Source: Octopus bimaculoides | Taxonomy: Eukaryota | DNA: 38,993 nt | Reading direction: 5' to 3' | NCBI RefSeq assembly: GCF_001194135.2 | Contig: NC_068982.1 | Location: 112,933,474-112,972,466 of the forward strand | Part shown: piece by piece, positions 2,949 through 38,993 of the stretch | Numbering within the stretch: position 1 is the first letter of the stretch | How the letters are laid out: the number at the start of each line of letters is the position of its first letter | Translations under genes and position numbers: made by a program | The notes under the pieces: model-generated | Told to the model about the DNA's origin: nothing | Database searches by the model: none | The model's input: the letters and a program-made list of their open reading frames with translations, nothing else

Positions 2949-3353
2949 NNNNNNNNNNNNNNNNNNNNNNNNNNNNNNNNNNNNNNNNNNNNNNNNNNNN
3001 NNNNNNNNNNNNNNNNNNNNNNNNNNNNNNNNNNNNNNNNNNNNNNNNNNNNNNNNNNNNNNNNNNNNNNNNNNNNNNNNNNNNNNNNNNNNNNNNNNNN
3101 NNNNNNNNNNNNNNNNNNNNNNNNNNNNNNNNNNNNNNNNNNNNNNNNNNNNNNNNNNNNNNNNNNNNNNNNNNNNNNNNNNNNNNNNNNNNNNNNNNNN
3201 NNNNNNNNNNNNNNNNNNNNNNNNNNNNNNNNNNNNNNNNNNNNNNNNNNNNNNNNNNNNNNNNNNNNNNNNNNNNNNNNNNNNNNNNNNNNNNNNNNNN
3301 NNNNNNNNNNNNNNNNNNNNNNNNNNNNNNNNNNNNNNNNNNNNNNNNNNNNN
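2949..3353. other. Assembly gap (405 N) between an (AC)n run and an (AAT)n run
   Basis: N run. Confidence 0.99.
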
Positions 3354-5576: not shown

Positions 5577-5664
5577 NNNNNNNNNNNNNNNNNNNNNNNN
5601 NNNNNNNNNNNNNNNNNNNNNNNNNNNNNNNNNNNNNNNNNNNNNNNNNNNNNNNNNNNNNNNN
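5577..5664. other. Assembly gap (88 N)
   Basis: N run. Confidence 0.99.
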
Positions 5665-5989: not shown

Positions 5990-8122
5990 AGTGATGGTGT
6001 CACAATAAATACACTGGTAAATGCGCAACCTGATAATCGCTACCTCATATGAATGAAAATGAAAGAACAAAATATTATGAATAACGGTGGTAATGAAACT
6101 GAACCCAATGATGGTGACAGTGTTGCACCCGGTAGGCTCAGAGATTCTTGTCCGGTTTCAGCCTGTCAATAGCCAGAAATGGACCACCACACACGGCGTA
6201 GATGGAGCAAGCAAATTAATGCTGTGGTCATGGAGCGTTACTACTTGAGCAGTCCGGTCGATGAAAATGGTGCTCAAATTAGGGGTTACCGACAACGCAT
6301 GTATGATCATTGGAGAGAAAAGTGATTGTTTCAACTCACGGAACAGAGACTATGTGATTAAGCTAGAGCAATAAGGAAAAATTGTTGGTTCCCAAAAGTA
6401 GAGCTCGAAGCTATCAACAGCAGCAGAGATAACGATGAAAATAGAGTTCTTACTAATAAAAGTAATCTCATGGCACAGGAAAGGAACGATGGTGGCTTAC
6501 TTGATGAGAGACTTATAGATGATCTCAAAGAAGACAATAAAACTAATGGCGACATGACAGATGAACAAAAGGCAATCTACGACAGAATAAAGGCACGACG
6601 CCAGGAGAACGATAGCAACATTATTTGTGACATTATTTGATCGATGGGAATTGAACCAAGAAACGTAAAATGTCAATTAAATTCTGAAATACATCAGAAC
6701 AGAAATATATCGCAGAAACAAATAATTTGATTAAGGCAGCAATTATTGTAGCAGGAAACGTAGGTGTTGATGTCAAGAAAAAGAAACATAATGAGAGTGA
6801 CAAAAGAAAAGATCCATGGTAGAAAAGAAGAATACAAGCAGGGTTAGATATGCTCTCGAAGGAAATCTCTGTCTTAGACCGAAAAGAGAAAAGGGAGCTT
6901 AAAAGTGAACAAAAATACAAGGCGCTGAAAAGGAAGTATGATATTGAAATAAAGGGCCTGAAAGTAGTAATGGAGGAAGCGAAACAGCGCCTCGATGCAA
7001 AGAAAGCAAAGATGGTAAGATACAACTAAAGAATGAAGGGATACCAGCAGAATAGGTTATTCAGAGTAGATCAGAAGAGATTCTACAAAGAAATAAATGG
7101 AGAATGTACAGATGAAAGGCTGATACCAGATAACATTCATAGTCAAAGGTTTTCGAGTGACATCTGGAGCAAAGACAAAGAGCACAAGAAGGATGCTGAA
7201 TGGTGGCAAGAACAGAAACAAACTGCAGTCTGTCCAAAACAGACAGAACAAGTCATTTCAGTTATGAAAGTGAAGGAAATCAGCAAAAAAATGGGCAATT
7301 GGAAGTTCCCGGGATGAGATGGAGTTCAAGGCTACTAGATCAAAAGATTTGGTGAATGTCATGCACGAATAACTGCACAGCTCAACGCCTTGTTAAATAT
7401 CGACCAAGTAACACCAGAGTGGTTGGCAATGTGTAGAATTGTGCCGTGCTTGAAAAACATCGTAAAGTCAATACGGTGGACAATTACAGGCCTACATTTT
7501 GCTTGCTACTTATGTGGAAGTTATTAAATGGAATAGTTGTAGAGTCAATGTACGAACATCTGGAATAAACTGGAGTCCTGCCACATGAGCAGAAGGGATG
7601 CAAACATGTGCAGAGGTATCAAGGATAGACAAAACTGTACTTAGAGACTGCAAGAAGAGGAAAAGTAATTTAGCCATATCATGGATCGACTATCGTAAGG
7701 TGTACGATATGATCCCACATTGCATCGAATGTTGAGCGATTGCTTGGAAAAAGTATCGGGAAGCGGAGGACTGATCTGACAGCATATGGAAGAAGTTTAG
7801 GGACAATAGAAATGAGGAGAGGCATGTTCTAATGGGACTGCTTGTCCCCACTAATCTTTGTACTGTGCATGATACCGCTAACACTGATTCTGAGGAAAGC
7901 AAAGGCTGGGCAGAAAAGAGCTGACAACAAAAAGTCAACCAATTGTTATTCATGGATGACCTCAAACGTTATGGTAAAGATGAAGCCCAAGTCAGTTCCC
8001 TCGTTGATAGGGTGTATATATTCAGTGCTGATATCAGAATGGTGTGTGTGGTGTGTTAAATTTGAAGAGAGGCAAAACCAAATGTACGGGCGGGCTAGTG
8101 ATACTGTCAGAGGAGGTTATGA
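5990..8122 (+). mobile_element. R4/Dong-clade non-LTR retrotransposon, decayed N-terminal region plus reverse transcriptase, 3'-truncated at (TAG)n
   Basis: Translation across stops and frameshifts: RRRWSKQINAVVMERYYLS, GYRQRMYDHWREK*LFQLTEQRLCD*ARAIRKN, QQNRLFRVDQKRFYKEING, NWKFPG*DGVQGY, WIDYRKVYDMIPH, LSPLIFVLCMIPL, QLLFMDDLKRYGKD (FMDD at 7949-7960). Confidence 0.9.
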
Positions 8123-9829: not shown

Positions 9830-10640
9830 GGGAGATGTGGTAATTTGGCCGTAGAAATTGTCTTACAGATATGACTGGGTTACCCTGATTGTGTAACATG
9901 GTGCATATTCCTGTTGCCAGACATAGAGTCTTCCAGCAGCCACCCTTTTGACCCAAGGCAGCACTACCTCTTCCAGGCACTTGATGTAGGCCTCCGTGCT
10001 GAGTCTGAGGACGTGTGTGAAATTGAATGGAGGCATAACATCGCCATCACTAGTGATCACTCCAAACACCATGATGTTCACTGCTTGTTTGATCTTTATC
10101 TCACATATTTTCGGTACATGGCAAGCCAACGGTTGTTCTGTGTTCACCATCTGATCCTGGCAGAAATTGTTTTCGTCTGAGAAAAACCAATGCGTGTTCG
10201 GATAGAGGGGATGCTTGAGTTTATTAAAAAAAACTGCCTAGCATGGTCTTTCCTATTGTCTTCGATGGTTTGGGATAAAAATTGGCACTTTCTCATCTTG
10301 TATCATCCACACCGAATGTTTTCATGCAATCCCTGATGGATAAGAAACACAGACACTTCCACATCTCTGGCAATGGTCCTGATTGACTGTCAATCGTAGC
10401 CTGGATCTCACACACAAATTCAGGAGTTGTTTTCTTATCAGAACGATCAGAGTGAGTTTTCCGAGCTGCCTTCGTAATCATCATTAGACTCATCTAACTT
10501 TTTTCCGAATCCTCCGCACTGCCCTCAGATTTAACCAAAGCACAATGAAATGTTCGTATTAGAGTTTCCGGCGGGAATGCTAAGCAATAAAGCATGCCGT
10601 TTCCAAATTTCCGGCAGAGTGAATTGCATCATGGTGTTGT
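9830..10640 (-). mobile_element. IS630/Tc1/mariner transposase pseudogene (DD37D/maT-like), 3'-truncated
   Basis: Minus-strand translation: start near 10632 (MMQFTLPEIWKRHALLL), RKTHSDRSDKKTTPEFVCEIQATID, WFFSDE (10172-10189), IMVFGVITSDGDVMPP, LEEVVLPWVKRVAAGRLYVWQQEYAPC. Frameshifted; the third catalytic Asp is missing, so the subfamily call rests on motif recall. Confidence 0.88.
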
Positions 10641-11822: not shown

Positions 11823-12360
11823 NNNNNNNNNNNNNNNNNNNNNNNNNNNNNNNNNNNNNNNNNNNNNNNNNNNNNNNNNNNNNNNNNNNNNNNNNNNNNN
11901 NNNNNNNNNNNNNNNNNNNNNNNNNNNNNNNNNNNNNNNNNNNNNNNNNNNNNNNNNNNNNNNNNNNNNNNNNNNNNNNNNNNNNNNNNNNNNNNNNNNN
12001 NNNNNNNNNNNNNNNNNNNNNNNNNNNNNNNNNNNNNNNNNNNNNNNNNNNNNNNNNNNNNNNNNNNNNNNNNNNNNNNNNNNNNNNNNNNNNNNNNNNN
12101 NNNNNNNNNNNNNNNNNNNNNNNNNNNNNNNNNNNNNNNNNNNNNNNNNNNNNNNNNNNNNNNNNNNNNNNNNNNNNNNNNNNNNNNNNNNNNNNNNNNN
12201 NNNNNNNNNNNNNNNNNNNNNNNNNNNNNNNNNNNNNNNNNNNNNNNNNNNNNNNNNNNNNNNNNNNNNNNNNNNNNNNNNNNNNNNNNNNNNNNNNNNN
12301 NNNNNNNNNNNNNNNNNNNNNNNNNNNNNNNNNNNNNNNNNNNNNNNNNNNNNNNNNNNN
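11823..12360. other. Assembly gap (538 N) flanked by (TACA)/(TA) and (TA)/(TG) repeats
   Basis: N run. Confidence 0.99.
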
Positions 12361-12884: not shown

Positions 12885-12968
12885 ATGTATATAAGTATGT
12901 ATGTATGTATGTATGTATGTATGTATGTATGTACGTACGTACGTACTTAGTATGTATGTATGTATGTA
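12885..12968. repeat. (TATG)n/(TACG)n run, i.e. the (CATA)n 3' tail of the adjacent LINE
   Basis: Direct read. Confidence 0.9.
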
Positions 12969-14055
12969 TGTTTTGCTTCATGCATGTATTCCCATGCATA
13001 TAGTTGCATAACTAAACATGCTGATATATATTTAAACGATGAACTTTTTACAGTTCCAGTCATGGATTGGGTTTGTAGTAATCGAATAAGCTTTCTCCTT
13101 TCTTGTTTTGAGAAGCCTAAATTCTCAAGATTGGTATTTAGGCAGTGTGTTATATATCTCAGGTCCCCAATAATTACAGGTATAAACCTGAACCTGTAAT
13201 CTCGATAGAGTAACTGCAGATTTCTCAATAGATCAGCGTAGGTATTCTCTTTTTCACTGATCATCAGCTTTGTGTTAACTTCCACTGGGCATCTAATTTC
13301 CATATCTGTACGCAGTTTCTCTTCTCTATCCCAAATCATTATATCAGGTCTGTTGTCCTTGCATTTTATTGCGGTCTTCACTGAGATATTCTACCAGTAC
13401 TTCTTTTTGTTATGAGTAGCTATGGCTTCTACCAAACTGTGGTTTCTTATTTCTTTGTCTTCGCGGTTATCCTCCCGACGGATTTCATTATAGAGTGACC
13501 GAGCTACAACGTCATGTCTCCTCGGTAGATAAAACCGTGATGACATTTTCGGACAACTGCTTATAATGTGAGTGATATCTCCTGTGATAACACTACAAAG
13601 GCTGCATCGGCTGTCACATTTTCTTACTTTCCCTGCATCTCTATTCCTTTTGTACATCAGGTACTTGGTTGATATTTCCTGTTCCTCGATTGCAAACCTA
13701 TACTCTTCAAAGTGAAAGGTAGTAATCCGACTATTGGTCTATGATAAACTACTTTGATGAACTCTGTTACTATCCTTTCGGAGCTTTCTACTAACATATT
13801 CAAACATAGTCTTCTGCACATATAGGCTCATCTTTGGACATGTATTCTAGGTTCTCAGGCAAAGAATGATGCTCAAGATGCTGCGTTCCAAGTTTTATGA
13901 TGTTATCAGTCTCATGCATGGAAACTTGGACAAGGGATGCACTTCGACACTTGGTAGTTAAAAGATGTTGCCGAAGGCATGTGATAAACAATCAAAGGCA
14001 TGCTAGATCGATGTTAAGCCTCTGCCGCCTTGTTTTCGTTTTAGCGATCATCGTT
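12969..14055 (-). mobile_element. R4/Dong-clade non-LTR retrotransposon 3' fragment (second family)
   Basis: ORFs 13391..13657 (CSLCSVITGDITHIISSCPKMSSRFYLPRRHDVVAR, a CCHC knuckle) and 12947..13381 (NRPDIMIWDREEK...EKENTYADL...FIPVIIG, restriction-like endonuclease); upstream KRKQGGRGLTSI motif. Confidence 0.9.
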
Positions 14056-14320: not shown

Positions 14321-15004
14321 CAGCTACCAGTTTGCCATCACCCCTTCCTTCCTTATTCATCTATCTATCTTACTCATCTACTGCCCCTTCCTTTCTCGTC
14401 CATATGTTGTGACGGAGAACAACAGATGAGTATTATTATAGTAGAAGATTCCAAATTCTTGTTAGAGTGGAGATTGGACCAGTCAGTCTGTACGGTGATG
14501 GCTTGATTGAAGAAGACCTTGCGTAATGGATGCCCTTCCTGATAAATATTTCAAAGAGTTGAAACGAAATATGCTTACATATCCTTTTAACAAGATTATC
14601 GTTCAGTTATTTTACAAGAAAGATGTTACTGTTCCTCGATTTTCGGTGAATGGTTCAAACTACCCTCTTCATGTTAAATACTAAAAATGATGTTCCGGAT
14701 ATTATATATTTATACGATTCTATACGTTATGGTATTGCATTATGTTATTGTGTGTCTGTATGTATGTTATGAAACTAATATCCGATAGCATAGCATGCAA
14801 TGTGATGTGCCAACGATACATCAACTGCGCAATCATTTGCGCTCCGAAGAATAACAATCAAATTTCTAAAATAAAACACGGTACCTTCTTATAACAGGAT
14901 GAAGATGAATAGTTTAATTCCAAGGCGAACACACTATATAGGAATATCATGAGCAAAAACGGACCTCAAGTTTTCTCTCTTTTAAATGAACTAAATGAAC
15001 TATA

Positions 15005-15417
15005 GGCGCAGGAGTGGCTGTGTGGTAAGGAGCTTGCTTACCAGCCACATGGTTCCGGGTTCATTCCCACTGCGCGGCACCTTGAATAAGTGTCTTCTAC
15101 TATAGTCTCGGGCGGACCGAAGCCTTGTGAGTGGATTTGGTAGACGGAAATCTGAAAGAAGCCCGTCGTATATATGTATATATATATATATGTGTGTGTG
15201 TGTGTGCATATGTTTGTGTGTATGTGTTTGTCCCCCCAACATCGCTTGATAACCGATGCTGGTGTGTTTATGTCCCCGCAACCTAGCAGTTCAGCAAAAG
15301 AGACCGATACAATAAGTACTAGGCTTCCAAAGAATAAGTCCTGGGGTCGATTTGCTCGACTAAAGGCGGTGCTCCAGCATGGCCACAGTCAAAGGATTGA
15401 AACAAGTAAAAGAGTAA
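15005..15417 (+). mobile_element. Full-length bipartite tRNA-derived SINE with internal (TA)/(TG) microsatellite
   Basis: GGCGCAGGAGTGGCTGTGTGGTAAG (A box), GGTTCATTCCC (B box), GCACCTTGAATAAGTGTC (CORE-like), and tail GGGGTCGATTTGCTCGACTAAAGGCGGTGCTCCAGCATGGCC...GAAACAAGTAAAAGAGTAA. Other copies at 15551, 30628 and 38755. Confidence 0.92.
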
Positions 15418-15550: not shown

Positions 15551-16010
15551 GAGTGACTGTGTGGTAAGTAGCTTCCTTACCAACCACATGGTTCCGGNNN
15601 NNNNNNNNNNNNNNNNNNNNNNNNNNNNNNNNNNNNNNNNNNNNNNNNNNNNNNNNNNNNNNNNNNNNNNNNNNNNNNNNNNNNNNNNNNNNNNNNNNNN
15701 NNNNNNNNNNNNNNNNNNNNNNNNNNNNNNNNNNNNNNNNNNNNNNNNNNNNNNNNNNNNNTGTATGTATGTATATATGTATGTATATGTAAGTGTGTGT
15801 ATATGTTTTTGTGTCTGTGTTTGTCCTCCCAACATCGCTTGACAACCAATACAGGTGTGTTTACGTCCCTGTAACTTAGCGGTTCGGCATAAGAGACCGA
15901 TAAAATAAGTACTAGGCATACAAATAATAAATCTTGGTGTCGATATGCTCGACTAAAGGCGGTGCTCCATCATGGCCGCAGTCAAATGACTGAAACAAGT
16001 AAAGAATAAA
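15551..16010 (+). mobile_element. Second copy of the same SINE, spanning a 164-N gap (15598-15761)
   Basis: Head (TGTGTGGTAAGTAGCTTCCTTACCAACCACATGGTTCCGG) before the gap, tail (…GACTGAAACAAGTAAAGAATAAAAA) after it. Confidence 0.88.
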
Positions 16011-16529
16011 AAAATATTTACTTCTAAGTATTATAATATATATATAATATGAAATATGTATTTTGCTTCTAACCTCCTAACACGTTTGTGCTTCATTTAA
16101 TCTCATGGTTAGATTTTAACATCATTTCAAGCTTAGTATCCTGTTAACCTTTCCTTTCAACTTGATATTTTCAAATGCTTTCTTTAGTATTTAGTTTGTC
16201 TTTGAGTGAATTTTATTGTCATTTTCTTATATTTTAGTATTTCGTTACTCTTTTATTTCATCCTATTGTTAATGTCTTTTATTCTTTCATTTAAACTTAC
16301 TTTTAACATTTTCTAAATCATCAGTATTTTAATAGTCTTAGAAGTAACCTTATGCGAAACTTTTTTCTAAGATTACTTCCTTCATATCTTACATCATCAG
16401 TTTTCAAAACCTTTAATGTAATCACGAAGACATGCACTTTTCAACTGTCGCTCATTTTACTTTTTGTCTTTTCGAAGAGGTTATATGTAGTACTTTCAAT
16501 CTTCTGTCATCGTTTCTCCACTCTGTCTC

Positions 16530-20200: not shown

Positions 20201-22504
20201 ATGATGAATGCAAGAAAGGAATTATTTTTACTCTGAGAACATAATTTAAGTTGTGGGATTTATAAACGAGGATGCAAATTACCCATGTCACAAAAATAAA
20301 CGCTGTTTAAAAGAATACGATGAGCATTTTACGTAGAAGGCCACATGCGTTTGGTAAGGGGCGCTATACGTTTACAGGGATTGCAATAGTCAACAGGCAC
20401 ATATTTTATTGTTTGCAGAAGTTGAGAAGCAAAAATGACTTAGATTTGAAAGTAAAAGCATAAATAGTTGTAATTCACTATCACAATTTATGCAATTGTT
20501 GAGATTCGTCGCCATTTTTCTTCTTATGATTGTATTTGTAAAATTATATCGATAGAAATGTGGTTCACATAACGCGTCGTTATTAAAGAACGATTATAAC
20601 ATAACATACATTTAAAATATATCTAAATATAATACATTAAAATATAATTGACTAGAACATTTATGGTTCAATTAACACCAATTCAGAGTTTTATGAATAT
20701 ATCTTTTCACGTTGCCGTCTTAAAAGCAAGTGAGATTTCAGAATATAGTGAAGTTTATTCTTTAAAATATAAGTGAAGAATATCAGTTCTCTTTCTTTTA
20801 GGTTAGCATTCCATTGTCGTATTTTATAGTGTTGCAATTTACATTGAAGCTTGAAGCATTTATTGAATACAGTCACTGAGAAAATACTTAGAACATTCAT
20901 TTATCACATTTAAAGAAACCTCCAGTTTTACCAGAATATTAACGAATGTTTTGCCACACATACAAAAAAAACAAAAAACAGCGGCGTGAGGTGCATATTT
21001 GCTGCCAAGTCAATACTTACAAGAAAGTTCCAATTATAACCTCGAAAAATGCGTGAAACCTTAATTTAATACAAGACAATGACTGAGTGAAATCTCAATG
21101 TTATACAAAACGATGACTGAGTTTCTGCAATGTGTTCATGGGATCTGCTATAAATCATATAAAAGTGACCACATATACGTGAAAGCACGCAGAAGAAAAG
21201 GATATATTGAATAATATATTTCAAGATATAATTTTTCTCGAAAAAATATAGCTTGGTCAGGGTTGGTACGTGTTTCATTATATTTGTGCTCAATACGCTA
21301 TCAGTTTCTTTATAATTCCCAGTATTTTACTACAAACATTTTCTAGCTATTATTGAAACATAGAATATTGGATTAAACAGTTAGCATAAAATATCATATA
21401 TGTTACTTAAAAGATTTGTAAAATATCATCACATTTATAAAGATTGCTCTTAAAACCTAGAAAAGATTATTCAAATTTGATTAAATATCTATTCTTCAGT
21501 TTAAGTGAATCAGGAATTATTAAGAATATATATAGGTAAAAATATAGTACCCACAAGAGTTGTTCTATTCCAACAATGAGATCTTCACTTACATAATTAA
21601 AGAACATACCTGCAAACATGATACATGGCTACGCACTATATGAATATCTATAGGATGGAGAAGTATGTAAAAAGTAGTGCCAAGAAGTGAGAACAATATG
21701 TAAGTACTCAGGTTTCAATGTCATTTCACGCGACCACAGACCTGTGGAGTAAGGTATCTCAATATATACTCGAAGGAAAAATATTATGTAGAACAAAATA
21801 ACATTATGCATCTATACATTTCTTGCAAACTTTAAAACTGGACTACTGATCTTAATATTACATCACAGTTTTATGGTTATCCTTTTACAATTCGAGAAGA
21901 TAGCTACAGAATGCCTACTGAACAAATGATCGTTAAGCGTTTACACCACGAAAATACGACGGAAAATGTCAATAATGTCACTTATCTTAAAAGGATATTA
22001 TACGTGTTATCAGTAGCTTTCCTAAAATATCATTGAGGTACTACCATGGAACGGGATCTTATTGCTAAAACAATGTAAAATGATATTCATGGAAAATAGT
22101 ATCCGGGATGATAAACGTTTGTTTTCCCCTGATGCTTGGTACATACCTCTATTTCAGCATTGAGGATATTAGTTGAGCGTTTTCACAAACAGTTCCACCA
22201 AATAATAGAAAACACACACACAAACAAACAGTTTAATATAGTTCTTTGGATCAGAAAATAAATATTAATACAGTAATATTGTTTAGTAGCCTGGCAAATT
22301 TGAACATTTCATTAAAATTACTGAGAGAGAGAATGGATATGAATAAATTATAAAAGGTACAGCTTTTCTTGACACATTATGAATTTACAAACTTACTGAA
22401 CAGGATACTTAATACAGTTCTATATTTAAGAGATGATGAATTATGTACGTTATTTGCATTATTTACATTTGACGGATACTTGTCCTCATCTTGTTTTGTT
22501 GTTA

Positions 22505-22552
22505 ACATAACGTTTCGGCTGATATACCCTCCAGCCTTCATCAGGAGGTGTC
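22505..22552 (-). ncRNA. Minimal type I hammerhead-ribozyme-like motif (core intact, stem I disrupted)
   Basis: Minus strand: GACAC-CTC-CTGATGA-A-GGCTG-loop-CAGCC-GAAACGTT-ATGT. Confidence 0.55.
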
Positions 22553-22769
22553 TTGGAGAAATTTCGAACCTGTGGGATGAAGTTAAAATAATTGACAGAG
22601 AACATCATTGGAAAATACGAAAACTAAAAGAAGTAGCACATATGCTAGGACACAACAACCTCACAAGCAGACCGAGTGCCGATATAACAGCATATGGGAA
22701 CCAGTATTAAGGAATGATAGGAAAATATTAGATTTATAAGGCCTAAAAATTCACTCCATAATTTCCCAC

Positions 22770-22837
22770 GGGCATATGGTGTAGTGGTTAAGAGTGCGGG
22801 CTACTAACCTCAAGATTCCGAGTTTGATTCCAGGCAG

Positions 22838-22839
<2 letters not shown>
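22770..22839 (+). other. tRNA-like (SINE-head-like) segment inside the PLE 3' region; not a functional tRNA
   Basis: TGGTGTAGTGGTTAAG (A box), anticodon-like loop CTACTAA, GAGTTTGATTCC (B-box-like); no proper acceptor stem; followed by (AAT)n at 22840-22870. Confidence 0.65.
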
Positions 22840-22873
<34 letters not shown>

Positions 22874-22920
22874 TCGAAAAATACCTTAGGAACGAGAACC
22901 CAGGTTCAAAATTTCCCCAA

Positions 22921-22966
22921 GACACCAGACGAAGGCTGGAGGGTATATCAGCCGAAACGTTGTGTT
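22921..22966 (+). ncRNA. Minimal type I hammerhead-ribozyme-like motif (stems intact, one core substitution)
   Basis: GACAC-CAGACGA-A-GGCTG-GAGGGTATAT-CAGCC-GAAACGTT-GTGTT. Confidence 0.55.
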
Positions 22967-23228
22967 AACAACAAACAAGATGAGGATAAATATCTGTCAA
23001 ATGTAAATAATGTAAATAGTATCAATAAGGATCCTTAATATTCACTTATTTTTCGATATATTTAAACAAAATACTTCATTTTCTCTTGCTTTTCGACATA
23101 TTTAGATGAACGCCGATATCACTTATATTTTTACATATTTAGATGAACGCTGATATCAATGCTAGAATATGAGTTTAGAAGATCGCAGGTTGAAAGTATA
23201 AGCTGTACATGAACACGTGTTTCTTTTA

Positions 23229-23910
23229 CCCGGCCGCGAAATTTTTTTCCCCAACAAGAGTTCTGGACCCCAGTTATGAACTTATTTGTATACAGCCAAT
23301 CAGAGCTCAAATACCACCTAGTCACGAAAACACTCTGGTTGAGTTCAGTGTAAAATGTGCGTTATAGCCAAATCTAACTGTTCTAAACGGGCTTATAGGC
23401 GTGACAAATGTGAAATTTAGTGTATAAAGTGAATAGAGAACTCCTCACCGATGATGCCATAAGTGTTGCCAATTTGCATAATTTACTAAAAGATGTAAAT
23501 GTGTGTAGTTTCCTAATTTTTTTACTGACTATGTTCATTCTTAATTTAAAATGTTGGTGTTGATCTGGAAATATCGTAATCAATACAGCGTTGTGCCGTA
23601 CTGCGCCCTCCTTATATATATCAATGGGTACATGCAGTATCACTAATTTCAGTCTGAGCGTAGGTGCCTAATGTTAGCTCCATATAGAGATGGTGTTCAA
23701 TTGATCTATGAGGACGGTGTGGGGGTAGATGTGGTGCTTATGTGAGACCTATGTTGTACTCACAGAGTGACATACACCATTCTATGCCTGACTGGCTGTA
23801 CTGTAGTAGTATACAGTATGTCGATTTTCAAGGTGAGCTGTGATTGGCTGTATGCAAATGAGTTCATTACTGGGGTCCGGAACTCTTGTGGTAAAAATTT
23901 CGCGACCGGG
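23229..23910. mobile_element. Non-autonomous TIR element, cassette 1 (about 80-bp TIRs starting CCCGG, TA on both flanks)
   Basis: TA|CCCGGCCGCGAAATTTTT...CAGCCAATCAGAGCTC (23229-23308) is the inverted match of GAGCTGTGATTGGCTG...AAAAATTTCGCGACCGGG|TA (23835-23910). Confidence 0.75.
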
Positions 23911-24447
23911 TAGCGAAATTTTTCCTTACGAGAGTTCCGGAACACGGTAATGAACTCATTTGCATACAGCCAATCACAGCTCATAGTGACCTTGTTGTTA
24001 AGTTAACAAACACACTCTACCAAGTAAACTCAAGACGAAGAACGGTGTTATAAGTCGACCAATCACCAAGTTATGTCTGATTTTAGGAGACAAATAATTT
24101 GATGGATTCGCATCTATACTTATTATCGGATTTTGTTAAGCCTCCATATGGTAAAGATGTCGATGGGAAAAGAGTGGTTAGATAGCAACTTACTGTTTTC
24201 CAAAGTAAACAACAACACAAACAACTACGCAGAGGCAGCCATGGTTGAAACAAGAACAAGAACGACAAGCATTCTTAAAAGAGAAAAGAAGCATGATCAT
24301 TCCTTATCCAAAAGCCCTTTTCTTATCGCCCATCACTTGTTATGCGCTGATAAATTAGTTTGATGGTTGAGCTCTGATTGGCTGTGTGTAAATGAGTTCA
24401 TAAGTGGAGGCCGAAACTCTCGTGGGAAAGAAAATTTCGCTACTCGA
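23906..24447. mobile_element. Non-autonomous TIR element, cassette 2 (same TIR family), carrying a MULE-like transposase remnant
   Basis: CCGGGTAGCGAAATTTTT...CAGCCAATCACAGCTCA (23906-23983) is the inverted match of TGAGCTCTGATTGGCTG...AAAATTTCGCTACTCGA (24368-24447). The interior encodes KEW...NLL...NNNTNNYAEAAM (24169-24243). Confidence 0.7.
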
Positions 24448-24619
24448 CTTCCCTTTTTAATCATTCTAGTAGCATTTACTTTGCTGCTCTATTCAATTTC
24501 CTCTAACCGCTACAAATGCAACGAATTTTAGTGTATAGTATATATATACTATACACTAAAATTCGTTATACCATATAATATGTTTTTGTGTGTACATATA
24601 TACATCCATAAATAAATGC

Positions 24620-26735: not shown

Positions 26736-28200
26736 GAGTGTAGGACAAAGACCTCCTAAGACAAAAGACACAGGAGCAAAAGCTCCTGGGAAAAAAGCCC
26801 CATAGTTAAAGTGTGAAGGTGGACAAAAGCCCCACGAACAAAAGGCCCACGGTTATATTCTTCGATTATTTTTCCGTTCTTTTTTTTTTCACCTTTTACG
26901 TGTTTTAGTCATTATATTGAGTCCACGCTGAGGCACCGCCTTGAAGAATTTTTAGTTGAACGTATCGACCCCAGAACATTTTTTTTACCTCTTATTACTT
27001 GTCGCAGTTATTAGACCGCGACCATGCTGGGGCACCACATTCAAGAATTTTTAGTCGAATGTATCGACGATAGAATTTTTTTATTTTCACTTGTTGCAGT
27101 TATTAGACTGCGGCTATTCTGGGGCACCACCTTGAAGAAATTTTATTCGAATGTAACAATCCCAGAACTTTTTTGAATGATTTTCAACCTGCGCATAAAG
27201 TTAAGCCTAGAAGGTATCTCCACATGCTAGAAATAACAGCCAAATCTCTTGAATTTTTTTTATAACCCCTTCGTTTTTTTTTTATTTTCTAAAAATCTTT
27301 TCATTTGTTTCAGTCATTGGACAGCGGCGATGCTTGGGCCCCAGCTTGAAGAATTTTTGGTCGTAGTAAATTCAGCATTTTAAAATATAATACTTAAAGT
27401 CTTTTGTTTTCTTCTCTTATCACTTACAGATTAATGAGAATAAATTGACCTTTTGAACTTTCTCCGGCCGTTGAAGTTCTAACAGAATTATGGCGCCGAA
27501 TGGCAGTCATTCAAACGCACTTCTTGCTGTTTTTATGTTTTAACAAATTTCCTGAAGTAAATTCTTTCCCGTTTGTTAGAATTCAAACAATACGTACATT
27601 GATTAATAAAGAGTCCTGTGCTCTGTTATTTTATTATTGATGTTATGGTTGATTTATTTTCATTTTAAAATTATAAAATTATGCTAAACACTTGGAAAAT
27701 AATTGTAACACACGGAACATACCATTGTGAGGGTCATAGATGTTTTGTCACCGATTTACGATTGAATATATTTTGTTAACTTAAAAATTGGATTTTGGAA
27801 AATAATTTTATTTTTACAACAACAATTTCTGTTTTGTTTACTTGAAATTATAACAGAAAATTTTGTAATATTTACCTACTATTTCTAGCATGTGCAGGGA
27901 CATTTTAGGCTTAACCCTATGTGCTTGTTGAAAATCACCTAAATAACATTCTGGGGTCGATATATTCGACTAAAAATTCTTCAAGGCGGTGACCCAGTAT
28001 GGCTGCAGTCCAGTAACTGGAAGAAGTAAAAAAGATTTTTTGAAAATATAAAAAAAAGAACGAAGAATAACCAAAAAATATTACCGGAGTAGGAGGGTTA
28101 TAAAAAATTTCAAGAGATTTGGTTCTTATTTCAAGAGATTTGGTTCTTATTTCTAGCATGCTTAACTACAAGCCTTAGTTGAAAATCATCTAAAAAATTT

Positions 28201-28735
28201 CTTTCATGCTTCTATACTGAATACCAGAGCCCTCATTTATTCCGAGGTATTTGTATGTTTGTTCCTGCTCGAGTTCTTTTATAACTGTATCAACTTCTAA
28301 CACCATTGAATGTGAAGTCTTCAATTTCCCTTTCTGGAAATTGACTTTGGCACATTTATCAAGACCAAATTCCATCCCGATGTCATCACTAAATGCTTTC
28401 CCAGTACGTAGTAGTCCTTCAAGCTCATTATCGTCTTTGCCATAGAGTTTTATGTCGTCCATATAAAATATACGACTTATTTTCTTGTCACCAATTTTAT
28501 ACCCATATCCAGTTCTGTTAAGTTCACTTGTAAGAGGTATTAGGGCTGTGCAGGAAATTAAAGGTGAAAGTGAGTCACCTTGGAAAATGTCACAGTTGAT
28601 ATTAATATTTTTGTGGTCAGTCCTCCATTAGAGTGGCATAATTGGTGATTCGTATTCCACGCTGATATGTTGTGCTTCAGGAAGTTTGAAATTACATGAG
28701 AAATTATTTTTATATGGCTGTAAAGAACCCAGAAT
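28201..28735 (-). mobile_element. Internal RT fragment of an R4/Dong-clade LINE embedded in element A
   Basis: WVL...NFLKHNISAWNT, then (frameshift) DIFQGDSLSPLISC, then ORF 28190..28462 YMDDIKLYGKDDNEL...GMEFGLDKCAK...YKYLGI. No 3' end or tail. Confidence 0.9.
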
Positions 28736-30627: not shown

Positions 30628-31006
30628 CTTACTCTTTACTCTTTTACACGTTTCAGTCATCTGACTGCGGCCATGCTGGAGCACCGCCTTTAGTCGAGCA
30701 AATCGACCCGAGGACTTATTCTTTGTAAGCCTAGTACTTATTCTATCGGTGGCTTTTGCCGAACCGCTAAGTTACGGGGACGTAAAAACACCACCATCTG
30801 TTGTCAACATATACACACACATACATATACATATACATATATACGACGAGCTTCTTTCAGTTTCCGTCTACTAAATCCACTCACAAGGCTTTGGTCGGCC
30901 CGAGGCTATAGTAGAAGACACTTGCCCAAGGTGCCACGCAGTGGGAATGAACCCGGAACCATGTGGTTGGTAAGCAAGCTACTTACCACACAGCCGCTCT
31001 TGCGCC
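30628..31006 (-). mobile_element. Bipartite tRNA-derived SINE inserted in the third core unit of element A
   Basis: Reverse complement of the 15005 copy with a short internal deletion. Confidence 0.92.
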
Positions 31007-31392
31007 TACTAATTTATTTTCGATTGAAAATACTTTGTTTACTTAAAATTTGGAATTTTGGAAAATAAATTTATTTTTACAACTGCGATATCCGTTTATG
31101 TTTATGTGAAACTATAAAAAAATAATAATTTGGCTGTTATTTCTAGCATATGGAGAGACCTTCTAGGCTTAATTTCATGCGCTGGTTGAAAATCATTTCG
31201 AAAAATTCTGAGGTCGATATATTCGACTAAAATTTCTTCAATTTGGTACTCCAGCATGGCCGCAGTCTAATGACTGAAACAAGTAAAAGGTGAAGAAAAA
31301 ATAATAATCAAAAAATATAACCGTGGGGCTTTTGTCCACTTTCATACTTTAACTCTGGGGCGTTTGTCCTAGGGAGCTTCTGTCCTACACTC

Positions 31393-38754: not shown

Positions 38755-38955
38755 TTTTATTCTTTTACTTGTTTCAGTCATTTGACTGCAGCCATGCTGG
38801 GACACCGCATTTAGTCGAGCAAATCGACCCTAGGATTTATTATTTGTAAGCCTATCTTCTTCTGTCAGTCTTTTGAGCCGAACCGCTAAGTTACGGAAAC
38901 GGAAATGAACCAGCATCGGTTGTCAAGAGATGCTGGTGGTGGTGGTGGGGAAACA

Positions 38956-38993
<38 letters not shown>
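38755..38993 (-). mobile_element. 3' half of the bipartite SINE, running into (AC)n at the window end
   Basis: TTTTACTTGTTTCAGTCATTTGACTGCAGCCATGCTGGGACACCGCATTTAGTCGAGCAAATCGACC... Confidence 0.9.

Follow-up and report, generated by a model that had tools for sequence, protein, structure and literature searches.

Two abutting transposon relics as the likely origin of a four-armed inverted-repeat block in Octopus bimaculoides

We analysed a 1.2-kb block of inverted repeats in the genome of Octopus bimaculoides. The block lies within a stretch of 38,993 bases (RefSeq assembly GCF_001194135.2, contig NC_068982.1, positions 112,933,474 to 112,972,466 of the forward strand), to which we refer as the window and from whose first base all positions are numbered. 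An arm of about 80 bp occurs four times across the block, in alternating orientation, and encloses two interiors that lack coding capacity. We consider that the block most probably consists of two short, non-coding relics of terminal inverted repeat (TIR) transposons from one family, which abut in opposite orientation, and we place the probability of this explanation at roughly 0.55. Each element would be bounded by TIRs of ~74 bp, running from the tip GCGAAATTTTT to a sharp inner edge, CAGCCAATCA(G/C)AGCTCA. This explanation, and the alternatives weighed against it below, rest on one locus and on the literature.

The four arms are well defined. Arm A (23236-23309, forward strand; from 23227 with the adjoining left 9-mer) reads GCGAAATTTTT...CAGCCAATCAGAGCTCA. 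It is followed by arm B (23834-23903, reverse strand; to 23912 with the central 9-mer), arm C (23913-23983, forward strand; from 23905 with the central 9-mer) and arm D (24368-24440, reverse strand; to 24449 with the right 9-mer). These positions agree to within 1-2 nt with those in a preliminary description of the DNA, which had been made from the letters alone. A 27-mer from the arm matched four times in the 38,993 bases, each time within the block, against an expectation of zero from 100 shuffles. A profile hidden Markov model (HMM) built from the four arms recovered each of them in a scan of the window with E values of 4e-25 to 1.5e-24, and pairs of arms aligned by BLAST with E values of 3e-21 to 5e-12. 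The A/B pair is 85.5% identical over 83 nt, the C/D pair 78% identical over 79 nt, and arms A and D show 79% complementarity across 71 nt. The inner edge is common to all four arms, which end on the same last base of CAGCCAATCA(G/C)AGCTCA, where the similarity stops. Such a shared inner end is expected for the TIRs of one family.

Arms B and C, together with the 9-mer between them, form a near-palindrome of 150 bp (23834-23983). The centre, 23893-23923, is exactly AAAAATTTCGC-GACCGGGTA-GCGAAATTTTT, in an 11-9-11 arrangement, and the whole comprises 67-nt arms that are 87% complementary. Both the near-palindrome and its centre of 11-bp arms around a 9-bp spacer had been proposed in the preliminary description, and the exact sequence and BLAST bear them out. 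Folded as single-stranded DNA, the palindrome reaches -73.7 kcal/mol (z = -19) and has a strong tendency towards hairpin or cruciform formation. It is likely to be a hairpin-forming and rearrangement-prone spot, whether it arose from two transposons or from the retroelement considered below.

The interiors of the two units are unrelated. Interior 1 (23310-23833, 524 bp) and interior 2 (23984-24367, 384 bp) are non-coding and unique in the window; neither resembles the other or the remainder of the window, and the earlier estimate of unrelated interiors of ~525 and ~385 bp was accurate. No Pfam domain was found in the block, in its long open reading frames (ORFs) or in all six frames. At the gathering score Rfam returned no family, the palindromes drawing only sub-threshold microRNA-like noise, and no tRNA was detected in the window. 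The ORF that spans the central palindrome has no protein homologue, and a concatenate of 1,464 amino acids, made from all arm and interior ORFs and the ORFs of octopus short interspersed elements (SINEs), gave 1,646 word candidates and none at E <= 1. An inverted duplication of a single element is ruled out by the unrelated interiors. [quoted passage not shown]

Three 9-mers lie directly beside the arm tips. The left 9-mer (23227-23235, forward strand) is TACCCGGCC, the central 9-mer (23904-23912, reverse strand) is GACCGGGTA, the reverse complement of TACCCGGTC, and forms the loop between the abutting ends, and the right 9-mer (24441-24449, forward strand) is TACTCGACT. The left 9-mer matches the reverse complement of the central one at 8/9 positions. 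Compared directly, the left and right 9-mers share 6 positions and differ by 3 transitions and 0 transversions. The fraction of window 9-mers that match the left one at >= 6/9 is 0.0024, falling to 0.00013 if transversions are also excluded, a criterion that was set after inspection of the data. The right 9-mer matches the reverse complement of the central one at 5/9 positions, with all 4 mismatches being transitions. On the forward strand the 9-mer is therefore read forward, reverse, forward, and from these matches the three appear to be copies of one sequence of which the middle is reversed, a point that is new here. The preliminary description had stated that each outer end co-varies with the inverse of the spacer. 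This stands for the left end, TACCCGGCC, at 8/9, and is looser for the right end, TACTCGACT, at 5/9. The related statement that the two units overlap by CCGGG is an interpretation of the letters, not an observation, and is unneeded.

Outside the left and right 9-mers there is no trace of a partner arm: the positions where one would start match at 2/11 and 4/11, and a longer comparison gives 20/70 and 27/70. The outer junctions are therefore plain junctions between element and flank. A separate 9-bp direct duplication around each element alone was rejected, as the flanks of element 1 match directly at 5/9 and those of element 2 at 3/9. The outer pair matches at 6/9, and the middle copy fits only when inverted, at 8/9. 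A TA dinucleotide is found beside both elements, although TA occurs in the window at a frequency of 0.096. The role of the left 9-mer depends on the model: it would be a copy of the target if the target had 9 bp, a TA followed by the 7-nt tip of arm A if the target were TA, and a TAC followed by a 6-nt left extension if the block were a retroelement of the DIRS1 type.

These observations allow two variants of the two-transposon explanation, of which we prefer a 9-bp target, at about two thirds of the weight, to a TA target, at about one third (about 2:1). With a 9-bp target, a first element would have entered TACCCGGCC and duplicated it. A second element would then have entered one of the two target copies, and this double insertion would leave a left, a junction and a right copy. 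The junction copy would form a 9-nt loop whose ends share 11 perfect or ~67 imperfect complementary bases, and the loop may have been reversed by a microinversion, with the inverted repeats on either side serving for template switching or repair. The implied empty site would be ...GTGTTTCTTT-TACCCGGCC-TTCCCTTTTTAATC.... The direct, transition-only kinship of the right 9-mer to the left (6/9, p 0.002) fits a 9-bp duplication better than a TA duplication. Reconstruction of the empty site from a paralogous repeat was dropped, since no other copy was seen of the sequence that directly borders the block.

The individual steps have precedents. Double insertion into one target leaves a single target copy in the junction, and has been described for DNA transposons and inverted tandems too (McGurk & Barbash 2018, PMC5932611). 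The block resembles such dimers in its single junction spacer of target length and in the same sequence outside, and inverted dimers, head-to-head or tail-to-tail, have also been reported (PMC5932611). It differs from them in the unrelated interiors of the partners and in the reversed junction copy, for which a later microinversion is needed (PMC8755829, PMC8794818). In a comparison of human and chimpanzee, microinversions were flanked by inverted repeats in 59/59 cases (3-75 nt, PMC8755829), and template switching has been described as a cause of loop inversion (PMC8794818).

With a TA target, as for Tc1/mariner- or Mirage-like elements, element 1 would span 23229-23910 and element 2 would span 23913-24440, with the middle TA common to both. 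The tips of element 1 would then be 7 nt longer than those of element 2, and the implied empty site would be ...GTGTTTCTTT-TA-CTCGACTTCCC.... MITEs of the Tc1/mariner or Mirage(CMC) type are similar to the block in that TA stands outside CCCGG...CCGGG in the first pair of ends and outside GCGAAA...TTTCGC in the second. They are unlike it in the 7-nt difference between the tips and in leaving unexplained why the right flank resembles the left tip. TIR elements make up 190 Mb in Octopus vulgaris, of which Tc1-Mariner accounts for 119, Mutator for 13.9 and Merlin for 2.2 Mb (PMC13282606). The dominance of Tc1-Mariner among the TIR classes in octopus suits the TA target.

The relationships among the arms bear on how the two elements would be joined. 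The alignment of the arms shows a near star-like pattern, and its columns split into 37 outer and 37 inner. In 5 columns arms A and D pair against B and C, including a 3-4-nt length difference located 12-16 nt from the tip, and in 3 columns A pairs with B, 2/3 of these being inside the 9-mer. The A/D versus B/C grouping agrees with ends of a left type and a right type, such that two complete elements would be joined right end to right end. Arms B and C are identical over the inner 37/37 nt. Private changes are unevenly distributed, with 5 in arm A, 0 in arm B, 3 in arm C and 10, the tip included, in arm D, the most diverged of the four. The lowest similarity of any pair is that of arms C and D, with 24/36 matches in the outer part. 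This uneven divergence could reflect gene conversion in the central palindrome, or left and right end types that existed beforehand. Gene conversion between B and C was dropped as a required step, as neither the 37/37 identity nor the unevenness of the private changes, though suggestive, is decisive.

Several points weigh against two abutting transposons. A single locus was seen in the DNA scanned, so mobility, copy number and the length of the duplication are presumptive. We scanned the 39-kb window and 20 kb of the O. vulgaris chromosome OX597824.1 for a second locus of the family. The arm was not found in the 20 kb of O. vulgaris, and the profile HMM gave no further copy in the window below E=11 and none in the window and the O. 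vulgaris locus together below E=1.8. A degenerate 27-mer that fits all four arms had no match in metagenome contigs, viral contigs or GTDB genomes. The 9-bp target requires an additional event, the reversal of the middle copy. The TA target leaves the likeness between the right flank and the left tip (CTCGACT/CCCGGCC) to what would be chance, with an estimated p of ~0.02 for the 7-mer, and does not account for a 7-nt difference at both tips of two relatives. An exact second insertion at one target is rare without a strong target preference. Moreover, the similarity between the elements ends at the edges of the TIRs, unlike that of simple internal-deletion derivatives of one parent. Finally, a model based on DIRS1-like retroelements needs no additional event to explain why the middle 9-mer is inverted and the tips are unequal.

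A 9-bp duplication combined with long TIRs and unrelated interiors is a trait of Mutator-like elements, including the Pack-MULE-like ones, or of Merlin. A 9-bp duplication with long TIRs here would accordingly point to a Mutator-like or Merlin-like transposase. The block is similar to Mutator-like elements (including Pack-MULEs) and Merlin in its long, sharp-edged TIRs, its short, non-coding and unrelated interiors and the 9-nt repeat outside its tips. It is unlike them in that the outer copies agree at only 6/9 and the middle copy is inverted, and no transposase was found with the block; its TIR sequence had no match in anything searched. The preliminary description had favoured two non-autonomous TIR elements, one inserted at the end of the other, and had classed them as CCC-terminated, TA-flanked CMC/EnSpm-like. 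The first part is the best supported explanation. The class label is not supported: CCCGG precedes only arms A and B, arms C and D start with GCGAAA straight after TA, and the block has no CACTA-type terminus or 3-bp duplication as in CMC/CACTA elements. Three other assignments were rejected. A minimal MITE, consisting of the central palindrome inside a larger element, is incompatible with tips that point inward. The flanks, TTTA and TAGC, are not the TTAA of piggyBac, and there is no matching 3-bp repeat as for PIF/Harbinger.

The main alternative is the DIRS1-like one, which we regard as unlikely. In this account the block would be a single non-autonomous, DIRS1-like tyrosine-recombinase retroelement, in which arms A and D are the inverted terminal repeats (ITRs) and the central palindrome is the internal complementary region (ICR). 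The layout would be TAC-CCGGCC-A ... B-GACCGG-GTA-C ... D-TAC. The element would begin and end with TAC, at 23227-23229 and 24441-24443, the halves of the ICR would overlap on GTA at 23910-23912, and a short extension on the left, CCGGCC, would be paired by the left ICR only. Propagation would proceed through RNA and cDNA copies, the ends being rebuilt on the ICR, and the resulting circle would be integrated by the recombinase of an autonomous partner.

Known DIRS1-like elements have ITRs and two ICRs; the left ICR is complementary and inverted with respect to the beginning of the element, and the right ICR relates in this way to its end. The two share a 3-bp overlap, the circular junction, which is complementary to the terminal trinucleotide, extensions are paired only by their own ICR, and there is no target duplication (PMC3266345, PMC8969392). 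The ICR is needed for retrotransposition (PMC7192593). In molluscs the ITRs measure 66-70 bp, with an outer 'divergent' part of ~35 bp and an inner 'conserved' part of ~32 bp (PMC3266345). The block has inverted terminal repeats and an ICR-type pairing of its centre with both ends. It shares with the elements of Piednoel et al. 2011 (PMC3266345) the ITRs and their size, an inside-out internal copy, an overlap on a trinucleotide and a one-sided extension. The central 9-mer is the reverse complement of the left and right ones without any extra event, the 6 extra nt are confined to the A/B side, and the geometry of the tips is exact, with the terminal TAC...TAC pairing with the central GTA. The arm size of 37 + 37 columns is near the scale of the mollusc ITRs, and a DIRS class has been plotted for the giant squid genome.

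Other features separate the block from DIRS1-like elements. Each of the four arms has its full length and ends on the same base, whereas known ICRs span only the outer part of the ITR and the extension (PMC3266345). The mismatch between ITRs and internal copy lies near the tips: the 3-4-nt indel and the substitutions that set A and D apart from B and C lie 12-16 nt from the tip, inside the stretch that the ICR would copy, and the least similar pair of arms, C and D, would be the right ICR and the right terminus. The terminal trinucleotide is TAC and not NTT, which is found in 23/28 described elements and as ATT/AAT in 5/5 mollusc ones (PMC3266345). Within the internal region the palindrome sits in the middle, 384-524 bp away from either ITR, instead of at the 3' end. 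The block has no ORFs of the expected kind, as Pfam revealed no reverse transcriptase, methyltransferase or recombinase remnant in any of its frames. The curated repeat table of O. vulgaris has no DIRS class (PMC13282606), and a literature search for non-autonomous DIRS derivatives, judged by titles and abstracts, brought up no paper on them.

Should this less favoured account be correct, it would describe a miniature, ORF-less cephalopod DIRS-like element, moved as a circle by a tyrosine recombinase, whose ICR repeats both terminal repeats completely and inside out; we hold this as doubtful as the account itself. Such a circle would contain two equivalent palindromic sites in opposite orientation, such that the interiors could be flipped or exchanged. 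As far as the literature was examined, this would be the first non-autonomous DIRS-type family described in a cephalopod. It would also represent a variant in which the ICR copies the whole terminal repeat, with a bearing on how the ends are rebuilt in these poorly understood retroelements.

An extreme form of this tyrosine-recombinase circle is the second model of the preliminary description, a cassette array in which the arm-spacer-arm junction is a site used by a tyrosine recombinase to stack or invert cargo. At the centre, an asymmetric spacer does lie between two inverted arms of 11 nt that match perfectly, one 9-mer is found at all three junctions, and, with the middle copy inverted, a circle formed from the block would have two sites facing opposite ways and a geometry in which inversion is possible. 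The resemblance to loxP/FRT (13-8-13) and dif (11-6-11), which also have inverted arm-like repeats around an asymmetric spacer, is one of geometry only. The 11-nt 'arms' of the block are the mere start of repeats of 74 nt, and its 9-nt spacer exceeds the 6-8 nt of the cores of characterised tyrosine recombinases. In the lox, FRT and att systems the sites on either side of an integrated circle point the same way, and stacking would likewise predict three spacers in one direction; in the block the middle one is reversed, the wrong orientation for integration. The outer junctions are half-sites, as the partner arm matches at 2/11 and 4/11, and the window contains no other arm. The ORFs tested matched only reverse transcriptase, although no scan of the window was aimed at recombinase genes. 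Any two abutting TIR ends give an arm-spacer-arm figure, and the geometry alone is thus no evidence for a recombination site. The cassette model fails on the missing outer second arms and the inverted central spacer, and we consider it very improbable.

If the block is indeed two abutting TIR elements, it is an ordinary transposon relic and its value is that of a worked caution. Abutting transposon ends will always mimic the arm-spacer-arm structure of a recombinase site, and a target copy trapped between them can flip, after which each element seems to own matching tips.

The inverted middle 9-mer could also be the scar of an aberrant transposition, which we judge improbable, though somewhat less so than the cassette array. 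This would involve a reversed-ends or hybrid-end event between two linked elements followed by rejoining, or a collapse by slippage of the palindromic tips. Reversed-ends events, as in maize Ac/fAc, leave target duplications in inverted orientation, and the tips of the block are quasi-palindromic, the central 9-mer matching its own reverse complement at 6/9. We could not derive three 9-mers of which the middle touches two ends from the standard reversed-ends products, however. More steps would be needed than for either two TIR elements or a DIRS1-like element, and the flanks show no visible rearrangement in support.

The least probable of the explanations is that the arms are non-mobile, cis-regulatory modules, duplicated locally around two non-coding units. 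The arms do contain motifs, a CCAAT-box-like AGCCAATCAG and an E2F-like TTTCGCG, that we take to be transcription-factor sites (CCAAT/NF-Y and E2F). Between or beside the arms there is no gene, RNA family or conserved ORF. The setting is rich in repeats, between a foldback element and SINE copies, and sharp-edged inverted repeats with short repeats adjacent to the tips are a transposon signature. The inner ends of the arms (23290-23305, 23838-23853, 23964-23979 and 24372-24387) have AGCCAATCA(G/C)AG in all four. At the tips, TTTCGCG is found in arms A and B and TTTCGCT in arms C and D, which we presume to be E2F-like. Read in this way, the motifs hint at a possible promoter activity in the repeats. 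Interior 2 has an additional CCAATCAC at about 24060.

With a GC content of about 0.33 the window is AT-rich, and it contains many microsatellites. Four assembly gaps (runs of N), each beside microsatellites, are located at 2949-3353, 5577-5664, 11823-12360 and 15598-15761, which marks the window as part of a draft scaffold with gaps. A foldback or MITE-like element of 568 bp (22451-23018) lies ~210 bp upstream of the block, with inverted arms of 122 bp that are 89% identical and unlike the four arms of the block. By eye, its interior at ~22768-22871 reads as a SINE: a tRNA-like head comes first, and an (AAT)n tail after it. Downstream of the block there are SINE-like repeats. Immediately to its left, at 23042-23155, a TCACTTATATTTTTACATATTTAGATGAACGCTGATA-like unit of 37-40 bp is repeated three times in tandem. 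To the right, at a distance of ~70 bp, there is a perfect palindrome of 48 bp (24520-24567; 24 + 24 nt, 100%). A 15-mer in one half of it recurs at 14/15 in interior 1 (23412-23426), and the palindrome draws only sub-threshold microRNA-like noise from Rfam.

A frame of 124 amino acids at 9866-10237 (reverse strand) looks transposase-like by eye (...WQQEYAPCYT...), with no support from Pfam, NCBIfam or PDB sequences. What we take to be decayed remnants of long interspersed elements (LINEs) are present at 28193-28627 and 12950-13738 on the reverse strand and at 7030-8100 on the forward strand. The first of these contains an RVT_1 reverse-transcriptase domain (28193-28627, reverse strand, E 3e-9), and a weak zf-RVT match lies beside the C-terminal LINE piece in the 12950-13738 region. 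The only homologues of the decayed ORF at 12950-13381 (reverse strand) are hypothetical proteins from Octopus vulgaris (84% identity) and O. bimaculoides (70%). A unit of 92 bp is repeated in 2.7 tandem copies at 26923-27174 and recurs in the right half of the window as dispersed SINE-like copies (27.9-29.2, 31.1 and 36.9-38.0 kb), with the ORF signature ...TAAMLGHRLEEFLVECIDPR.... Several SINE copies of the window align with the 20-kb piece of O. vulgaris OX597824.1 at 75-87% identity, which agrees with an octopod origin of the DNA. A second SINE-like family is found at 14994-15417, 15794-16021, 30629-31008 and 38756-38975, and matches several places in that piece at 74-87%.

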